This document shows, one piece after another, positions 8,058 through 27,156 of a stretch of DNA of 64,000 bases. The notes under the pieces were generated by a model. That model saw only the letters and a program-made list of their open reading frames with translations, was not told where the DNA came from and searched no databases. Each line of letters starts with the position of its first letter. Position 1 is the first letter of the stretch. The translations under genes and the position numbers were made by a program. The stretch is taken from the sequence record ON190025.1. One strand, written 5' to 3'.

Positions 8058-8084
8058 AAAAAAGGGCGCTATTTGCGCCCTTTT
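8058..8084 (-). terminator. Rho-independent terminator
   Basis: GGGCGC/GCGCCC stem flanked by A6 and T4. Confidence 0.75.
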
Positions 8085-8593
8085 GTTTTTTGTTTCTTTG
8101 CTTTTCGTTTAGCCCGTCTAAGTTCTTTTCGTTTAGCGATTTTATCTGCTCTTCGAACTGCGTCGTAATCAGCAGCACAAGACGCAGCAAACGCATCAGG
8201 TTTGAACACGGGCTCTTGACCAACATATCCCAATATAGTACCTTTAGCTTCGTTATAGGCAACGTGAGATTTGTGTGTAGGGTCAGGGTTGATGTCAACG
8301 TGAACTTCAAAGCCTCTAGTACCGCACATTGGCTTAACCATTAGTGCAGTTTCACCCGCTTTGTATACTTCATTCATCAATCGACTTCTGATACCATCTT
8401 TACATGATAAGTATGCAGGTTCAGTCTCAACTGCTTTAAACACTTGAGCACCTTTACTACCTTCAAGATGAATTATGATCACAGTCGCGTAACTAATCAT
8501 GTCACTTTTACGCTTACTATCACACCCAACGTATATTGTGCTATTTGGATGACTGTTATTGATAGCTGTTTCTATCGCTTCCCAATCGAACAT
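8069..8593 (-). CDS. RNase H-fold protein, YkuK/DUF458-like
   Basis: IYVGCDS, YATVIIIH, EVHVDIN and KPDAFAASCAAD motifs; basic C-terminal tail; GAGG SD before ATG 8593. Confidence 0.75.
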   Translation of the reverse strand: MFDWEAIETAINNSHPNSTIYVGCDSKRKSDMISYATVIIIHLEGSKGAQVFKAVETEPAYLSCKDGIRSRLMNEVYKAGETALMVKPMCGTRGFEVHVDINPDPTHKSHVAYNEAKGTILGYVGQEPVFKPDAFAASCAADYDAVRRADKIAKRKELRRAKRKAKKQKTKGRK

Positions 8594-8606
8594 TTTCACC
8601 TCTTAC

Positions 8607-8642: not shown

Positions 8643-10079
8643 TTAAAAGCTGTAGCGTTCGACGCCTACAGTTTTCATCATGATCTTGACTGGCTCAAGC
8701 TCACCACTCAACAGTGAAGTCAAGATAGATGGGCTACAACCAGATACCAGTGCAGTGCCCGCTTCGCCAGCTTTAACCGGAACGTTGCCAAGACGACCAC
8801 GAATGTTCCAAAAGACCAGTTGTGGCATTTCATAACCAGCACGTGCGTACTTGGCTTTGATTGCATCGAAGTTCGCAGGTTCACCGCGACCGTACCATCC
8901 ACCACCAGTGTTTGCTTGATCGAATTCCATGTCACTCATGATAAGCAACTTGGTTGGCATATCTTCTTGTGAAAGATTTGCACGCTTCGCACGTTCTAAC
9001 AGAACATCAAAGCACTTACCGATGTTCGTGCTCATGTCTTCGCCTGAACGATTCATGTTATCAAGACGCTCTTTCAATGAAGAGCCGCGCAACTGGTGGA
9101 AGTGCGGGTCGCTTGAGAACGAAATGAACTGATCTTTGAAGATGCCTTCATTGCGTTCAGCAACATAAATCCCAAGAGACATTGCAACTTGCTTACAAGT
9201 CACACCTGAATGGTCTGTACCTGCGTTAATTGGCGTGCTCATAGAGCCAGACACGTCAACAACAGGGATGATGCGTTCATCAGAACCTTCCATGTAGTTT
9301 GGCAGAGCTTTCCATTGCTCGTTCGCTACAGACGCATTACCGTGACTAACGCTCTTAACGACATCGTATGGGAACAGTGCGCCAGCGTTGATCTTCGCTT
9401 CACCTTTTTGAAGTGACTCGATGTAGCTTGTGTAACGAGCTGAAGCGTTACGACCGAATGCTTGTTGATAACGAGCAGACGCTACAGAAGGCAACTTACC
9501 GAAGTCGATTGCATCCCATTTTTGCGCACACATCTTCTGCTCAACAGTGTCAGACAGAAGCGACAGAATCTTACGCCACTGCTTCGCAGTTACGCCAAGA
9601 GACTTGATTGTGCGCTTGAACACATGACCGTTTTTGCTGTTTTCACGTGGGAACCACTTCGCAGCAAGACCATTCTTGTCATTGACAATTGCGTTCGACC
9701 ACATTGTAATCGCATCTTTTTCAAGACGTGTACCGAAAGCAGAAATCAAGTCATCGTAACGACCTAGTTCTGGAATTTTCGACATTACAGCACGAGCTAC
9801 GTCAGGCTGTTCATTACAAAGTTTAGTGAATAGTGTACGGAAAGTACCACGTTCACCCGCACCACCTCGAACGTCACGAGACCACAAAAGAATGCGAGTC
9901 GCTAGTTCTGGGTTTTCTGCAAACGCACGACCGAACAGCGTTTTAGACTGATCGTTGCCACGCATAGCAGCAATACCGAAGAACAAGTTTAGACACTCGT
10001 TACCTGAAGTGCTGTGAGTAACTGCACCGTTTGCTGTGCGTGAATCGTTTGTTTGCATTGCGTTCATAAATACTGACAT
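8643..10079 (-). CDS. DUF2828-family protein (helical TROVE/Ro60-like N-terminal region plus C-terminal vWA)
   Basis: TANGAVTHSTSGNECLNLFF, RDVRGGAGER, LAAKWFPRE, KINAGALFPY; MIDAS DVSGSM, SDMEFD, VFWNIR. The TROVE relationship is inferred. Confidence 0.85.
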   Translation of the reverse strand: MSVFMNAMQTNDSRTANGAVTHSTSGNECLNLFFGIAAMRGNDQSKTLFGRAFAENPELATRILLWSRDVRGGAGERGTFRTLFTKLCNEQPDVARAVMSKIPELGRYDDLISAFGTRLEKDAITMWSNAIVNDKNGLAAKWFPRENSKNGHVFKRTIKSLGVTAKQWRKILSLLSDTVEQKMCAQKWDAIDFGKLPSVASARYQQAFGRNASARYTSYIESLQKGEAKINAGALFPYDVVKSVSHGNASVANEQWKALPNYMEGSDERIIPVVDVSGSMSTPINAGTDHSGVTCKQVAMSLGIYVAERNEGIFKDQFISFSSDPHFHQLRGSSLKERLDNMNRSGEDMSTNIGKCFDVLLERAKRANLSQEDMPTKLLIMSDMEFDQANTGGGWYGRGEPANFDAIKAKYARAGYEMPQLVFWNIRGRLGNVPVKAGEAGTALVSGCSPSILTSLLSGELEPVKIMMKTVGVERYSF

Positions 10080-10115
10080 TGTTCATTTCCTCATAATTAA
10101 TTGCTGTAAAATGTC
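10075..10115 (-). promoter_or_regulatory. 5' UTR copy of the helix-NN-NCWGCAA motif pairing over the DUF2828 start codon
   Basis: GACATT-TT-ACAGCAA-TTAATTATGAGGAAATGAAC-AATGTC; AATGTC contains the ATG and the GAGG SD is in the loop. Confidence 0.8.
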
Positions 10116-10127
10116 GTTGATGTGATG

Positions 10128-10156
10128 ATTATACACGGATTTTAACCCGTGTAAAC
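10128..10156 (-). promoter_or_regulatory. Sigma70-type early promoter of the DUF2828 gene, palindromic spacer
   Basis: GTTTAC-17 nt-TATAAT; TACACGG...CCGTGTA inverted repeat. Confidence 0.8.
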
Positions 10157-10821: not shown

Positions 10822-11186
10822 AGATATTCCTTAATATCTTTTGAAAAGTGACGAATACATGAACTATCAAGACGTTTACGACCATCACCGTCAATATCAG
10901 GTAATGTGTACCCATCATTGAATGGCTGACCGCTTGATTTAGCGATTTCGTATGCATCACTTCGATTGAAATATTCACCGCAGTAATTGATGAAACCTTG
11001 ACCACGATCACCAAGCTCGTTACGATGCTCATATGTACAGCCAAGTTCTTTCAATAGCTTAAACACGCCTTGCATGTTTCGTCCGAAATGACAGCTATCT
11101 GCGACTACGATCTCTCGCTGCTCACCATTCGGCATAGTCACTCGAATCGCATTAGCAGCACAAGAAATTACATTTACGTGCGACAT
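10818..11186 (-). CDS. Conserved-type phage hypothetical protein
   Basis: 122 aa, QGFINYCGEYFNRSDAYEIA motif, coupled overlaps. Confidence 0.75.
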   Translation of the reverse strand: MSHVNVISCAANAIRVTMPNGEQREIVVADSCHFGRNMQGVFKLLKELGCTYEHRNELGDRGQGFINYCGEYFNRSDAYEIAKSSGQPFNDGYTLPDIDGDGRKRLDSSCIRHFSKDIKEYL

Positions 11187-11536
11187 GTATCGTACCTCAT
11201 AAAAATAGAACCAACACGTTTGTATTGATTAGAATACATTAACAGTTTTGTCATTTTGCTGTGAGCAACAGGGTTGCTTGTTACAAGAACGACAGTTCGT
11301 GGGTAATTGCGATGGTCGATGGCATGTGATAGAATATCATAACCCTCTCGACCGACAGCATCACCTAAATCATTGTCCATGAAAAGTGTAATGTCAGTAA
11401 GATTCGTATACTTGACGAATTTCATGCCGTCGTCGAATGTACGAATCACGCGCTTTTCATCGTCTAGAATATTCGGTTTGGTGAACTTATTAATGTCACG
11501 TAAGTCATCAATCATTACAAACATAGTATTTCTCAT
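11174..11536 (-). CDS. Cyclic-phosphate-processing receiver (cREC)-like domain protein
   Basis: IDDLR, MDNDLG, GYD and TSNPVA match the LDDxR/SLDHDLG/GYD/HSxNPxG pattern of this stand-alone receiver family. Confidence 0.65.
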   Translation of the reverse strand: MRNTMFVMIDDLRDINKFTKPNILDDEKRVIRTFDDGMKFVKYTNLTDITLFMDNDLGDAVGREGYDILSHAIDHRNYPRTVVLVTSNPVAHSKMTKLLMYSNQYKRVGSIFMRYDTCRT

Positions 11537-12828: not shown

Positions 12829-12853
12829 AAAAAAACCTGCTCAAGGCAGGTTT
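12829..12853 (-). terminator. Terminator ending the tRNA/ncRNA operon
   Basis: AAACCTGC-CTTGA-GCAGGTTT then T run. Confidence 0.85.
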
Positions 12854-12868
12854 AGATGTGCAATACAC

Positions 12869-13113
12869 AGACATTCGAGAAGTGTTTTATCGTCTTTCCT
12901 TAAATCTCATTTGACTATAACGATGTTTCTCATCGGAAAAATACTCATGTTTCGGCATGAGTCCTATTTCGTTTGACAGTACGAACACCGTCTTAATGGT
13001 CATTTCCTACCACGAGAATGCGACAGGCTCACGTCATCACTGAGAAAGCAGCTAGTGCGCCTCATTACTATTAAAGTTTGCTTTGATTTTGTAATGATTG
13101 CTGTACAATGTCT
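12869..13113 (-). ncRNA. ~245 nt structured RNA closed by the motif helix
   Basis: AGACATT-GT-ACAGCAA...AATGTCT; internal hairpins TCATTAC/GTAATGA, ACTCATG/CATGAGT, CGATG/CATCG, TTCGT/ACGAA; no ORF in the track. Confidence 0.75.
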
Positions 13114-13124
13114 TATTGCGAATT

Positions 13125-13213
13125 TGGCGGAAGCACTGGGAGTCGAACCCAGAGAACGCTATTAACGTCCGACACCTTAGCAGGGTGCTGTCATACCTTT
13201 AGACCATGCTTCC
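13125..13213 (-). tRNA. tRNA-Ser(GCT)
   Basis: Cloverleaf, long variable arm, CCA. Confidence 0.95.
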
Positions 13214-14857: not shown

Positions 14858-15085
14858 AGACAATACCGAAGTGTTTTTTCGTCTTTTGCATAAATCGGAG
14901 TTGACTAGCTTATTGATTCTCAACAAGCAAATATCGTCTGTTTCAGCGACGCGCCTATCTGACTATTTCTAGACAGAGAGAATCTTTCCTTTCAAGCTGC
15001 GCCTAAGCAAGCTCAGGTTAAAATCAGCCCAGGTTAAGATCATCACTTCTTTTAAGTAATTTCAATTGTTTGCTGTATATTGTCT
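14858..15085 (-). ncRNA. ~228 nt structured RNA closed by the motif helix, paralogous to 12869-13113
   Basis: AGACAAT-AT-ACAGCAA...ATTGTCT; shares AAGACGAWAAAACACTTC (17/18) and AGTGATGA with the 12869 RNA. Confidence 0.75.
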
Positions 15086-15148
15086 CCCTCACCATGCTCG
15101 TGATATGCCGAAGCAAAGTATCATTCGTCGCATGATAAGAGCTTAATA

Positions 15149-15690: not shown

Positions 15691-15696
15691 GTTACT

Positions 15697-15808
15697 GAGT
15701 GTTATTACTAGCGTCGTCCAGACCAGTGATACCAACACTGAAAGGGAATCGAACCCTAAACATTTCTTTCCGATAAGAATATTAGTAAATTGTTTGCTGA
15801 AAACACTC
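15697..15808 (-). ncRNA. YrlA-like circularly permuted tRNA mimic (candidate phage Y RNA)
   Basis: GAGTGT-TT-TCAGCAA...AGGG-TTCGATT-CCCT (T arm), CAGTG-TTGGTAT-CACTG (closed acceptor), GTC-TGGAC-GAC (D arm)...ACACTC. Confidence 0.75.
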
Positions 15809-16218: not shown

Positions 16219-16276
16219 AGTAATCCTTTTTGCTTTTTCCAAATAAAAGTTTTGTATTGTTTGCTGTAAGATTACT
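16219..16276 (-). ncRNA. 58 nt RNA consisting mainly of the motif
   Basis: AGTAATC-TT-ACAGCAA...GCAAAAAG-GATTACT. Confidence 0.7.
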
Positions 16277-16980: not shown

Positions 16981-17067
16981 AGCTTGCGTTCTTTGGTCTG
17001 TTTATCGCTGTCTGAACTGAGTTCGCCGAGCGATCAATAGATTAAGTTAAATTGCAGTATGCAAGCT
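16981..17067 (-). ncRNA. 87 nt motif-closed RNA
   Basis: AGCTTGC-AT-ACTGCAA...ATCGCT/AGCGAT hairpin...AAAGAAC-GCAAGCT. Confidence 0.7.
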
Positions 17068-17726: not shown

Positions 17727-17857
17727 CTTTTCTTCATTGTACATGATGTTTATATCGTTGTAAACATCTTTTTTTGAAAAACTTTTCATTCGTTTTTGAA
17801 TGATGTTTCGCTTTTCTTCATTGTACATGATGTTTATATCGTTGTAAACATCTTTTT
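17727..17857 (-). promoter_or_regulatory. Exact 47 bp direct repeat (17727-17773, 17811-17857), each a sigma70-type promoter
   Basis: TTTACA-17 nt-TACAAT in each copy, with inverted repeat GATGTTTA...TAAACATC over the -35. Confidence 0.8.
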
Positions 17858-18941: not shown

Positions 18942-19057
18942 TGGTAGTCGGGGCTGGATTCGAACCAGCGACCACGTGCTTAACAGGCAATTGAAGGAGT
19001 GCTGGAGCGATACTTGTCAGTATCATTCTTCGTGCTCTACCACTGAGCTACCCGACT
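18942..19057 (-). ncRNA. tRNA-shaped RNA, anticodon loop replaced by a motif-bearing insert (CCA present)
   Basis: AGTCGGG/CCCGACT-A-CCA, normal D and T arms; insert GATACT-GACA-AGTATC-GCT-CCAGCAC. Confidence 0.75.
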
Positions 19058-19840: not shown

Positions 19841-19965
19841 TGGTGGAGAGTACGGGATTTGAACCACGTGACAAAAAGATTTACCTAGTTATTAAGGTTT
19901 GCAGCATGAATGCTTGTCAGTATTCTTTAACATTCTTTTGCTCTACCAGACTGAGCTAACTCTCC
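19841..19965 (-). ncRNA. tRNA-shaped RNA with motif-bearing insert (CCA present)
   Basis: GGAGAGT/ACTCTCC-A-CCA; AAAAGA/TCTTTT stem encloses GAATACT-GACA-AGCATTC-AT-GCTGCAA. Confidence 0.75.
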
Positions 19966-19975
19966 GGAATTTGAA

Positions 19976-20088
19976 GGTGAAGTGCAGGACTCGAACCTGC
20001 GACCTCCGGCGTGCATGTGAATGCAGAATGAAATCTTATCAGACTTCGTTTTTTGGCCGGCGTTCTAACCTACTGAACTAACTTCACC
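19976..20088 (-). ncRNA. tRNA-shaped RNA with motif-bearing insert (no CCA)
   Basis: GGTGAAGT/ACTTCACC; insert AAAAAAC-GAAGTCT-GATA-AGATTTC-AT-TCTGCAT. Confidence 0.75.
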
Positions 20089-25549: not shown

Positions 25550-26397
25550 TATACGAAAAAATCTTCGATGCCTCGTAGAGTTACTTTCTCTGCGTTACCA
25601 CACTTAGGACATTTAACGTCAACATAAGTGGTGATTCGCGGCACTGCATCTACGAAAGTTTGAACTTTCTTGAATGCAGCAGTGTCTAGTTCACCCATGA
25701 TATTGATCAACTGACCTTGTGCTGCAAGCTCTTCTTTACTGTACACAGTATCACCAACGTGAACTTCTTTGATTGATTCAACAGCAATATTGAACAGACC
25801 TTCAGGTGTGTTAGGGTCGTTGTTCTCATACACGCGAATATTCGGGTGTTGGAGTTTGATTAATACTTGTTTGTTAACACGAACTGTATCTTCACCGGTG
25901 AATGCAGGCACAAACGCAGCGTTTAAGTCTATATTTGCTGTGATTCGTTCACCACATAGACGCTTGTCAGGTGCGAATACTGATTCGATTGCTTCTTCGT
26001 TTGATTGATTAACGATCTCTGCGAACAAGTCATCGGCAGATTTCTCAAGTTCAGCTTCTTCTTGTGCGTCTAGCTGCTTGAGTTCTTCTTCTGGCTTATC
26101 TGCACAGCAGTTATATTCCGCTTGAATTTCAGTTACGCCATTGCTGTTCATATACATGTGCATGAACAAGTATTCAGCATCACCAACCGTTAGGTCTTCC
26201 ATCTTGATGTCTGAAACAATACAGTTTTCAAGACATTGCTCGATTGCATCAACCTTTTCATCTGATTCGTTAGCGATCAACAGTGTTTTATGCTCTTTTG
26301 CAAGCATGGCACGTAACTTGATCTCTTCGCCAGTAGATGGTAGTTTTACAGTATATTGAGGCGCAGCAAGTACGCTCAAATCAAATGGTTTTGTCAT
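25549..26397 (-). CDS. 26: Baseplate hub subunit gp26-like
   Basis: PQYTVKLPSTGEEIKLRAMLAKEHK N-terminus; C-terminal CPKCG zinc ribbon. Confidence 0.8.
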   Translation of the reverse strand: MTKPFDLSVLAAPQYTVKLPSTGEEIKLRAMLAKEHKTLLIANESDEKVDAIEQCLENCIVSDIKMEDLTVGDAEYLFMHMYMNSNGVTEIQAEYNCCADKPEEELKQLDAQEEAELEKSADDLFAEIVNQSNEEAIESVFAPDKRLCGERITANIDLNAAFVPAFTGEDTVRVNKQVLIKLQHPNIRVYENNDPNTPEGLFNIAVESIKEVHVGDTVYSKEELAAQGQLINIMGELDTAAFKKVQTFVDAVPRITTYVDVKCPKCGNAEKVTLRGIEDFFV

Positions 26398-26409
26398 GAT
26401 ATTTTTGCC

Positions 26410-27156
26410 TTAAAATAAGTTTGGGAATGTTTCTGCCGCAGTATTGTAAATGCTGTTATATGTTTTTTCGAAATTCTGTGTTATATCTAACGTGTCTGCG
26501 ATTGTGCTAGATAAATCTTCAGTCATGTACGTTGCACTTTCGTAAACAAATTCAACCTCGAATTCGGCAACTGCATTGCTATTTTCATAGCCCAACTGAA
26601 CTCCACCGACTCGAATAGGAAACGCATTTTTTAAACTGGTCATAGTAACCATGTTCGCGTTGCGGTCGTACGTGTAAATCTCGATAGTGCGTGCGTAATT
26701 CGAGAAGAACCCGACTTGTGCAGAGTCGTTTGAATAAATCTGTTTGAACCACCCCAATAGCATTTTACGCTCAGGGTGTGACGGTGAAAGATACAGCGAC
26801 ATCGTTACCGTTTCATCAGTTTTCGTTTTGATTACATGATGCGGACGTCTTCTCGATCTATCAATATCTGTTTCATATGATGACCCAGGTATATTTACTG
26901 ATTTAACCATCATCCCGATGTTTCGCTCGAATTCAAACCCACTACCGAATAACGCAGCAGTCGAGGCTAATGCATCTTTAACCCCGATACCGTTTACTCT
27001 AGTCGATGCAGCATTCGAGAACGTTTCACCAGTGTTCATTAACTGCTTTGCTGTATCTTGCAGCGATGCAAAACGCACCGCATACAAGTTTTGTCTTGCT
27101 AAATCGTTCTTATTGATCTGAGATAAGAACTTTTTAACGTCAATACCGATTGCCAT
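26410..27156 (-). CDS. 54: Baseplate tail-tube initiator gp54
   Basis: DLARQNLYAVRF, VKSVNIPG, AFPIRVGGVQL...FEVEFVY tube-like fold. Confidence 0.8.
   Translation of the reverse strand: MAIGIDVKKFLSQINKNDLARQNLYAVRFASLQDTAKQLMNTGETFSNAASTRVNGIGVKDALASTAALFGSGFEFERNIGMMVKSVNIPGSSYETDIDRSRRRPHHVIKTKTDETVTMSLYLSPSHPERKMLLGWFKQIYSNDSAQVGFFSNYARTIEIYTYDRNANMVTMTSLKNAFPIRVGGVQLGYENSNAVAEFEVEFVYESATYMTEDLSSTIADTLDITQNFEKTYNSIYNTAAETFPNLF

Follow-up and report, generated by a model that had tools for sequence, protein, structure and literature searches.

A 245-nucleotide RNA at the end of the tRNA operon of Vibrio phage PVA23 is a probable large-cargo analogue of Y RNAs and belongs to an RNA family linked to Ro60-like genes

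The 64,000-nucleotide (nt) stretch of sequence record ON190025.1 analyzed here (the window) matches Vibrio phage PVA23, a KVP40-like schizotequatrovirus, at 100% identity. Its tRNA operon ends with a 245-nt non-coding RNA, RNA A, which by its genomic context and architecture is probably a phage-encoded, large-cargo analogue of Y RNAs. RNA A belongs to a widespread family, absent from Rfam 15, whose members are closed by a short stem followed by the motif UACAGCAA (stem-UACAGCAA RNAs). The analysis establishes the architecture of RNA A, its paralogy to a second RNA of the operon, its agreement with the family at the invariant positions, the predicted Ro60-like fold of a protein encoded downstream, and a genome-wide link between the RNA family and the relatives of that protein. 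Physical binding of the protein, tethering of an effector and autoregulation are what we infer. The parts of RNA A are as follows, P1 being the closing stem.

12869..13113, minus strand: RNA A, 245-nt non-coding RNA, final element of the tRNA operon (from an open reading frame (ORF) scan and conservation)
13107..13113, minus strand: 5' strand of P1, AGACAUU, pairing with 12869-12875 and including the family-invariant G2-C pair
13098..13106, minus strand: family motif GU-ACAGCAA, immediately 3' of the 5' strand of P1
13026..13061, minus strand: conserved hairpin region GGCGCAC..GUGAGCC, enclosing GCUG/CAGU and a GUGAUGA box (13034-13040)
12999..13010, minus strand: segment GUAGGAAAUGAC, with little or no variation in five of the six lineages
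12911..12917, minus strand: UAGUCAA, conserved and common to RNA A and its paralogue RNA B
12877..12908, minus strand: 3' terminal hairpin GAGA/UCUC, with compensated stem
12869..12875, minus strand: 3' strand of P1, AAUGUCU, then GU (12867-12868); the resulting ..CUGU end is the family consensus
12833..12853, minus strand: intrinsic terminator of the tRNA operon with its T run, 15 nt past the closing stem of RNA A

The tRNA operon occupies the minus strand from about 20300 down to 13125 and is syntenic with the tRNA cluster of T4 downstream of gp3 and gp1; 31 tRNAs are found in it with Rfam and 28 with ARAGORN. RNA A comes directly after the last of them, Ser-GCU (13125-13213), and does end the operon, as the original prediction had it. 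The terminator predicted about 15 nt beyond the stem is also there (12853..12833 plus the T run). It is present in all lineages compared, with compensatory changes (CCUGCC/GGCAGG versus CCCGCC/GGCGGG).

RNA A is kept in about 50 KVP40-like Vibrio phages, and orthologues of 149-271 nt from six lineages (PVA23, KVP40, nt-1, 1.081.O, D482 and F86) were compared. Because their indels are not multiples of three and their lengths vary over this range, a conserved ORF is excluded. None was found among the orthologues, and the longest internal ORF, of 38 amino acids (aa), lies in a stretch that is deleted from them, in agreement with the earlier claim that no ORF is present. The predicted closing stem was found on the minus strand, AGACATT-GT-ACAGCAA (13113..13098) facing AATGTCT (12875..12869). 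The conserved pieces of the cargo that it encloses are the GUGAUGA-bearing hairpin, in which GCUG/CAGU is compensated by GCCG/CGGU, the segment GUAGGAAAUGAC, UAGUCAA, and the terminal hairpin with GACGAUAAAACAC in its loop. This 24-nt loop contains AAGACGAUAAAACAC (12879-12896), which includes the A-rich 3' element of the family, while the stem varies between GAGA/UCUC and GUGA/UCAC, and in RNA B between CCGA/UCGG and GCGA/UCGC. The five hairpins originally proposed are indeed enclosed in the PVA23 sequence, but since only four helices are kept across the six lineages, several of the five are lineage-specific. Three further structural candidates were rejected: a long-range helix GAAGUG/CACUUC between the GUGAUGA region and the 3' loop, which is lost in orthologues, and a k-turn at GUGAUGA, for which no opposing CUGA was found (both judged by eye on the aligned sequences), as well as pairing of ACAGCAA with GCUGC within RNA A, which shows no covariation.

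Rfam, whose scanning had been proposed as a check, returned no characterized family for RNA A, and none for RNA B, at either gathering or E-value thresholds. nhmmer searches with profiles of both RNAs found homologues only inside the KVP40-like clade. An initial scan of IMG/VR with a 14-base pattern yielded chance matches only, and a more specific one matched KVP40 and VH7D alone.

Four relatives of RNA A lie within the same operon; scores in the list are for the covariance model R1, described below.

14858..15085, minus strand: RNA B, 228-nt paralogue following tRNA-Arg(UCU), with 8 helices and 20 of 45 pairs compensatory
15693..15803, minus strand: RNA C, unannotated, in a tRNA spacer, with a T arm and then a D arm as tRNA-like cargo; its P1 has 6 base pairs (bp) in PVA23
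16219..16276, minus strand: RNA D, unannotated minimal member of 58 nt in the tRNA-Trp/tRNA-Asn spacer (R1 49.8 bits, E 3.8e-12)
16981..17067, minus strand: RNA E, unannotated 87-nt member in the tRNA-Tyr/tRNA-Met spacer (R1 20.1 bits)

RNAs A through E share a closing module composed of the stem, NU-ACAGCAA, an A-rich stretch on the 3' side and the trailing G. RNAs A and B are paralogues, as the original prediction proposed, with common 5' and 3' modules. GTGATGA occurs in both, and the 18-mer AAGACGAWAAAACACTTC that they were said to share is found exactly twice in the window (12879-12896 and 14868-14885) versus 0.24 copies expected. Structurally, RNA B is much better supported than RNA A: 92.5% of cells are paired, and 20 pairs show two-sided changes compared with 6.0 in shuffles (0/500) and 1-5 in slid controls. 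Its P1 differs between phages (AGACAAU/AUUGUCU, AGAUAAU/AUUAUCU and AGGCAAU/AUUGCCU). Orthologues of RNA C in nt-1 and F86 have a 7-bp P1 (TGAGTGT/ACACTCA), and P1 of RNA D, AGUAAUC/GAUUACU, is compensated in KVP40 (AGCAAUC/GAUUGCU). Between tRNA-Arg(UCU) and RNA B, at 15088-15148 on the minus strand, lies a UUCG-tetraloop hairpin (..UUGCUUCGGCAU..). It is kept in all lineages, which suggests that RNA B may begin upstream of its closing stem.

To find the module in a defined way, we used a strict scan that demands a perfect 7-bp stem, with N-U-N-C-N-G-C-A-A after the 5' strand and G after the 3' strand. The window holds four matches (A, B, D and E), all on the minus strand and in the tRNA operon; dinucleotide-shuffled versions of the window hold 0.95 on average and at most 5. 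When R1 was run over 10.6 kb with filters off, RNA D ranked first, and the next four matches were the 5' parts of RNAs C and B, the leader of a Ro60-like gene (E 0.0034) and the 5' part of RNA A (E 0.012).

That gene encodes a protein of 478 aa, and its relatives provided the means to follow the RNA outside the KVP40 group. Our sample comprised 80 IMG/VR loci encoding relatives of this protein with 40-98% identity. For the family-wide strict scan, 78 of the 80 loci (all but the KVP40 group) were taken together with three loci from phage collections; in these 1.30 Mb the scan gave 145 matches versus about 19 expected, nearly all on the strand of the Ro-like gene and often adjoining it. R1 was then built from 32 non-redundant short members of 57-63 nt, whose ends align cleanly and whose stem covaries at six of seven pairs, G2-C being invariant. 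At E <= 0.1, R1 returned 99 matches in 1.43 Mb of Ro-like loci, 98 of them on the gene's strand, compared with 2 weak matches (18-19 bits) in 0.90 Mb of unrelated viral loci serving as a control. A match is present in 58 of the 80 loci, and the median distance between match and gene is 218 nt. As 51 of the 80 loci are without any tRNA gene, the association is with the Ro-like protein and not with tRNA arrays.

R1 matches stand beside the Ro-like gene in phages of Staphylococcus and Listeria (three in tandem in each), Klebsiella, Bacillus, Mycobacterium and Campylobacter. The mycobacteriophage match, UA-ACAGCAA, lay outside the reach of the scan that supplied the training set. Among 77 distinct members of the family, positions U9, C11, G13, C14, A15 and A16 are invariant or nearly so. 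RNA A holds every invariant position (G2-C, U9, C11, GCAA and the trailing G). Its 7-bp stem AGACAUU/AAUGUCU is followed by GU, the motif NU-(A/U)C(A)GCAA takes the form GU-ACAGCAA, the A-rich segment (..UAAAC..) is represented by GAUAAAACAC 9 nt ahead of the 3' strand, and a DUF2828 gene lies on the same strand. What the module encloses varies from no cargo (RNA D) or a small one (RNA E) to a tRNA mimic (RNA C and many others) and large idiosyncratic domains (RNAs A and B). A looser pattern (GUCAAA...GACGNNAAA) linking RNAs A and B to 170-nt members in marine phages was not specific and was discarded.

In a Listeria phage encoding a protein of the same family, virions were found to contain the Ro-like protein, and three unannotated RNAs of very high abundance, which the authors propose to be Y RNAs, map to the 2 kb upstream of its gene (PMC12282133). 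These observations indirectly support the reading of RNA A given here. We examined the corresponding region of Listeria phage cka16, where locus L213 4470-5021 (equal to about 26195-26746 of cka15) matches the ROOL model at 90.1 bits (E 7e-17), below the threshold of 99.1. This match coincides with the most transcribed unannotated region of CKA15 (26,236-26,727), and judged by this similarity the most abundant of the three CKA15 RNAs is probably a ROOL RNA. It was therefore dropped as a candidate member of the present family, since it is not among the three R1 matches there. In a separate observation, marine phage contigs that encode the Ro-like protein carry tmRNA genes, standard and permuted, within a few kb (L147 8605-9054; L196 7782-8124), beside tRNAs and Y-like RNAs.

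The gene for the 478-aa protein and its control region are arranged as follows.

8643..10079, minus strand: gene for the 478-aa Ro60-like protein (Pfam DUF2828 and DUF7788; TROVE-like ring and vWA domain), 2.8 kb downstream of RNA A
10072..10116, minus strand: leader copy of the module, GACAUU-UU-ACAGCAA, 20 nt including the Shine-Dalgarno sequence, then AAUGUC (R1 E 0.0034)
10128..10155, minus strand: sigma-70-like promoter of the gene, TTTACA-16-TATAAT, conserved, with 11 of 12 matches

An AlphaFold2 model of the protein, computed from a 25-sequence alignment, reached a mean predicted local distance difference test score (pLDDT) of 81.4 and a predicted template-modelling score (pTM) of 0.79. 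In Foldseek, its five best matches in the PDB were a TROVE domain, the two chains of the phiLo Ro60 dimer, Rsr from D. radiodurans and RNA-bound Xenopus Ro, each aligned over about 510 columns (E 5e-9 to 2e-5, probability 1.00, template-modelling scores 0.49-0.57). Matches below these five cover the vWA half only. Because the matches to Ro60 and TROVE structures are full-length, the 478-aa protein is, by its predicted fold, a divergent Ro60-like protein with a TROVE ring and a vWA domain; its identity to the solved Ro60 structures is 12-16%. Relatives occur in 711 phage records, where mycobacteriophage annotation calls them 'Ro-like RNA binding protein', and over 7,500 relatives of the DUF2828 branch as a whole are recorded in the protein database.

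The leader of this gene carries its own copy of the module, recognized by R1 even though it was absent from the training set. The AUG start codon lies inside the 3' stem strand AAUGUC, which suggests translational autoregulation of the Ro60-like protein. Motif and pairing are kept in KVP40, VH7D, nt-1 and F86 while the flanking leader diverges, leaving a conserved island, and the hairpin is the minimum-free-energy fold in three lineages. On either side of the gene, also on the minus strand, are genes for a cREC_REC protein (cyclic-phosphate-processing receiver) and an RNase H-like protein (PF04308), at 11174-11536 and 8069-8599. These neighbors are candidate partners in RNA-end processing and are conserved within the KVP40 clade only.

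The arrangement of RNA and protein gene is that of known Y RNAs in several respects. As for YrlA (RF02553), Yrn1 of D. radiodurans and Yrl1/Yrl2 of phiLo, a gene for a Ro60-like protein, here Ro60-like by predicted fold only, lies within a few kb (less than about 4 kb) on the same strand. The two ends of the RNA likewise pair, forming a stem beside conserved single-stranded nucleotides, and a modular docking stem is combined with a variable cargo. In Thermus phage phiLo, Ro60 binds two phage-encoded Y-like RNAs and the host PNPase (PMC12135203). In many of the longer family members, a T arm is followed by a closed acceptor-like hairpin and then by a D arm, the permuted tRNA-like layout of YrlA. 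Positions 23-89 of the 114 in the Rfam YrlA model align to the tRNA-like cargo in a marine phage and in mycobacteriophage MiniLon with about 38 bits (E about 1e-6), and the alignment stops at the flanks of the cargo, where the stem-UACAGCAA module replaces the YrlA stem. The permuted tRNA-like cargo and the shared docking module thus indicate that the family behaves like Y RNAs. Even so, the tRNA-like relatives reach only 35-38 bits on the YrlA model against a gathering threshold of 69 bits, and a search at that threshold in the surroundings of the Ro-like genes in Mycobacterium, Felix-O1-like and Aeromonas phages came back empty.

RNA A itself departs further from these RNAs. The protein concerned belongs to a divergent DUF2828/DUF7788 branch. 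RNAs A and B are without a tRNA-like domain, whereas their sibling C has one, and RNA A is about twice as long as the YrlA model (245 nt versus 114 positions). The canonical Ro-binding motif takes the form GNCGAA(N0-1)G or that of a helix with a bulge close to the 5' end (PMC4201824). In RNA A, GACGAU/GACGAA is confined to the loop of the 3' hairpin, and P1 is without a bulge. The Y-RNA analogy drawn in the original prediction consequently holds in part. In its favor are the Ro60-like gene 2.8 kb downstream on the same strand, a closing module that is the signature of RNAs tied to such genes, and the YrlA-like tRNA mimics among its members; RNA A nonetheless falls outside the sequence definition of YrlA, having no Rfam match and no GNCGAA in its stem.

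Several results weigh against reading RNA A as a partner of the Ro60-like protein. Its module is a plain 7-bp stem plus UACAGCAA, with neither a bulged helix nor GNCGAA(N)G, and the YrlA model finds no match on it at E <= 5. The fold of RNA A taken alone is not above shuffles (z = -1.22), and its conserved helices number only four (17 pairs) across the six lineages, with a poorly conserved interior. P1 is without any variation among the RNA A orthologues; its covariation stems from the paralogues and the wider family. Within the family, the training members were picked by a scan that demands pairing, so their 100% pairing exists by construction. R1 aligns only the 5' half of RNA A (14.7 bits, E 0.012), because a 60-nt model cannot bridge a 200-nt insert. 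Little stability is predicted for the leader hairpin (-3 to -4 kcal/mol, z >= 0). Finally, a terminator, several small ORFs and one opposite-strand ORF lie between RNA A and the Ro-like gene, and no protein neighbor or candidate effector gene is conserved with the system outside the KVP40 clade.

The mechanism that we propose is as follows. Transcription of the tRNA operon would yield RNA A as its 3'-terminal unit, with an end at the terminator or one trimmed back from it. Its docking module, made up of P1, the 5' NU-ACAGCAA, the 3' A-rich ..AUAAAACAC.. and the trailing G common to RNAs A-E, would bind the Ro60-like ring protein encoded at 8643-10079. The cargo of about 200 nt may then tether a second factor to the Ro-like protein, such as a ribonuclease or an RNA-repair or tRNA-handling enzyme; alternatively, it may gate the cavity of the protein, as Y RNAs do. 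In the leader, the module would pair with the start codon, and the protein could repress its own translation when free RNA partners are scarce.

The most serious of three rival explanations, though an unlikely one, is that RNA A is a stable by-product or spacer of the tRNA operon, its stem and motif serving as a processing signal by which an endonuclease of the host or phage frees the neighboring tRNAs, with no relation to the Ro-like protein. All of RNAs A-E do lie between or after tRNAs, and a 7-bp stem plus 2 nt resembles an acceptor stem. In the syntenic operon of T4, a related myovirus, the stable non-tRNA species 1 and 2 RNAs (rnaC and rnaD) likewise end the operon after tRNA-Arg(UCU), and rnaC has a tRNA-like T arm at its end. 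By inspection, however, these RNAs share no motif or stem design with RNA A, only the position in the operon, and the T4 tRNA region has no R1 match better than E 0.46. The explanation is weakened above all by the 51 of 80 loci in which the family stands beside the Ro-like gene with no tRNA gene in reach, and a generic processing signal would leave the copy in the leader of the Ro-like gene unexplained.

Somewhat less likely again is a trans-acting role by base pairing or as a decoy, in which the loop (AAGACGAUAAAACACUUC) or ACAGCAA pairs with or mimics another RNA, for example titrating a host nuclease that targets tRNAs. The longest invariant stretches of RNA A are predicted to be single-stranded, as such a role would have it, and phage tRNA clusters are, in general accounts, often tied to the evasion of tRNA-directed defenses. 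Yet the window offers no complementary target apart from a similarity to the stem of RNA C, and ACAGCAA is conserved from Vibrio to Mycobacterium and Listeria phages, which points to a conserved protein partner and not to host-specific targets. That RNA A has no function as an RNA, being an inverted repeat arisen by chance, a repeat at the DNA level or a short unannotated coding region, is very improbable. The weak z-score of its fold, the small hypothetical proteins annotated over it in some records, and a strict-scan count in the window that shuffles can equal (4 against 0.95 expected and up to 5) would fit such a view. The four matches nevertheless all share one strand and fall inside 4.2 kb of the tRNA operon, compensatory changes accompany the conservation of the elements across six lineages, the indels and lengths of the orthologues exclude a conserved ORF, and the family-wide R1 statistics (99 versus 2 matches) speak against it. 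We therefore retain the large-cargo Y-RNA analogue as the probable identity of RNA A.

The nearest Rfam neighbor of the family is the Dictyostelium Class I RNA (RF01414), with RNA D matching at full length at 31.8 bits against a threshold of 41.5. [quoted passage not shown] Their consensus consists of a stem starting with G, CUUACAGCAA, an A/U-rich loop, a run of A and a stem ending in CUG. The phage RNAs resemble them in the end stem initiated by G-C, the AAG...CUGU ends, the motif with UUACAGCAA right after the 5' strand, and a variable, A/U-rich remainder, the minimal phage members also being of the same size (about 60 nt); in RNA A the corresponding parts read ..AAGACAUU-GU-ACAGCAA....AAUGUCUGU. 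There are clear differences. The scores of 31.8 and 30.8 fall short of 41.5, and RNA A, four times longer (245 nt versus 42-65 nt), has no match. The hosts of Class I RNAs are amoebae, their genes have a DUSE promoter element and Pol III-type termination, and their known direct binder is the RRM protein Rnp1A/CIBP, with no link to a Ro-like protein reported. Full-length matches to RF01414 below the threshold were seen for both RNA D and L147 11844-11900. The similarity of these sequences makes a link between Class I RNAs and the phage family a lead and not a finding.

The tRNA operon contains additional unusual elements. Three tRNA-like genes of 112-122 nt on the minus strand (19976-20087, 19844-19965 and 18945-19057) are normal in their acceptor stem, D arm and T arm, but their anticodon arm is enlarged by an insert of about 45 nt. 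They score 50-56 bits with the Rfam tRNA model and were overlooked by ARAGORN, and the inserts of two of the three have AAGAAUG..ACUGACAAG in common. Comparable long 'tRNAs' are found in phage F86 (L207 343-596) and near the Ro-like gene of Aeromonas phage phiWae14 (L212 11761-11878 and 12029-12146). Additionally, two near-identical tandem promoter-like units are located within the operon at 17736-17848 on the minus strand, upstream of tRNA-Leu(UAG), each being TTTACA-17-TACAAT inside ..gatgtttacaacgatataaacatcatgtacaatgaagaaaag...

Ro60-Y RNA particles are conserved from bacteria to humans, and their partner RNAs are hard to find by homology. For the DUF2828 branch, we found no partner RNA defined in the literature. 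RNA A would belong to a variant of the Ro60-type ribonucleoprotein whose docking module differs and whose cargo is new; if the family-wide link holds, the implications would be unusually broad. A bolder and doubtful extension is that the stem-UACAGCAA module is the universal docking site of the DUF2828 Ro60-like branch, with one ribonucleoprotein design spanning the phages of Proteobacteria, Firmicutes and Actinobacteria and the dictyostelid Class I RNAs. Were this true, Class I RNAs, now held to be unique to dictyostelids and without a known mechanism, would be analogues of Y RNAs; the cargo would be swappable, from none through a tRNA mimic to the large domains of RNAs A and B, with RNA A as a new class of cargo that brings an enzyme to the ring protein; and the copy of the module in its mRNA leader would let the protein sense free RNA. 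With the RNA family described here, the DUF2828 branch gains a simple, searchable RNA signature, and several unannotated gaps in the tRNA clusters of KVP40-like phages are accounted for. The family also provides a starting point for understanding the mechanism of the Dictyostelium Class I RNAs, a hint of self-regulation by the protein, and a concrete set of minimal, tRNA-like and large-cargo RNAs with which phage Ro-like particles may be studied during infection.

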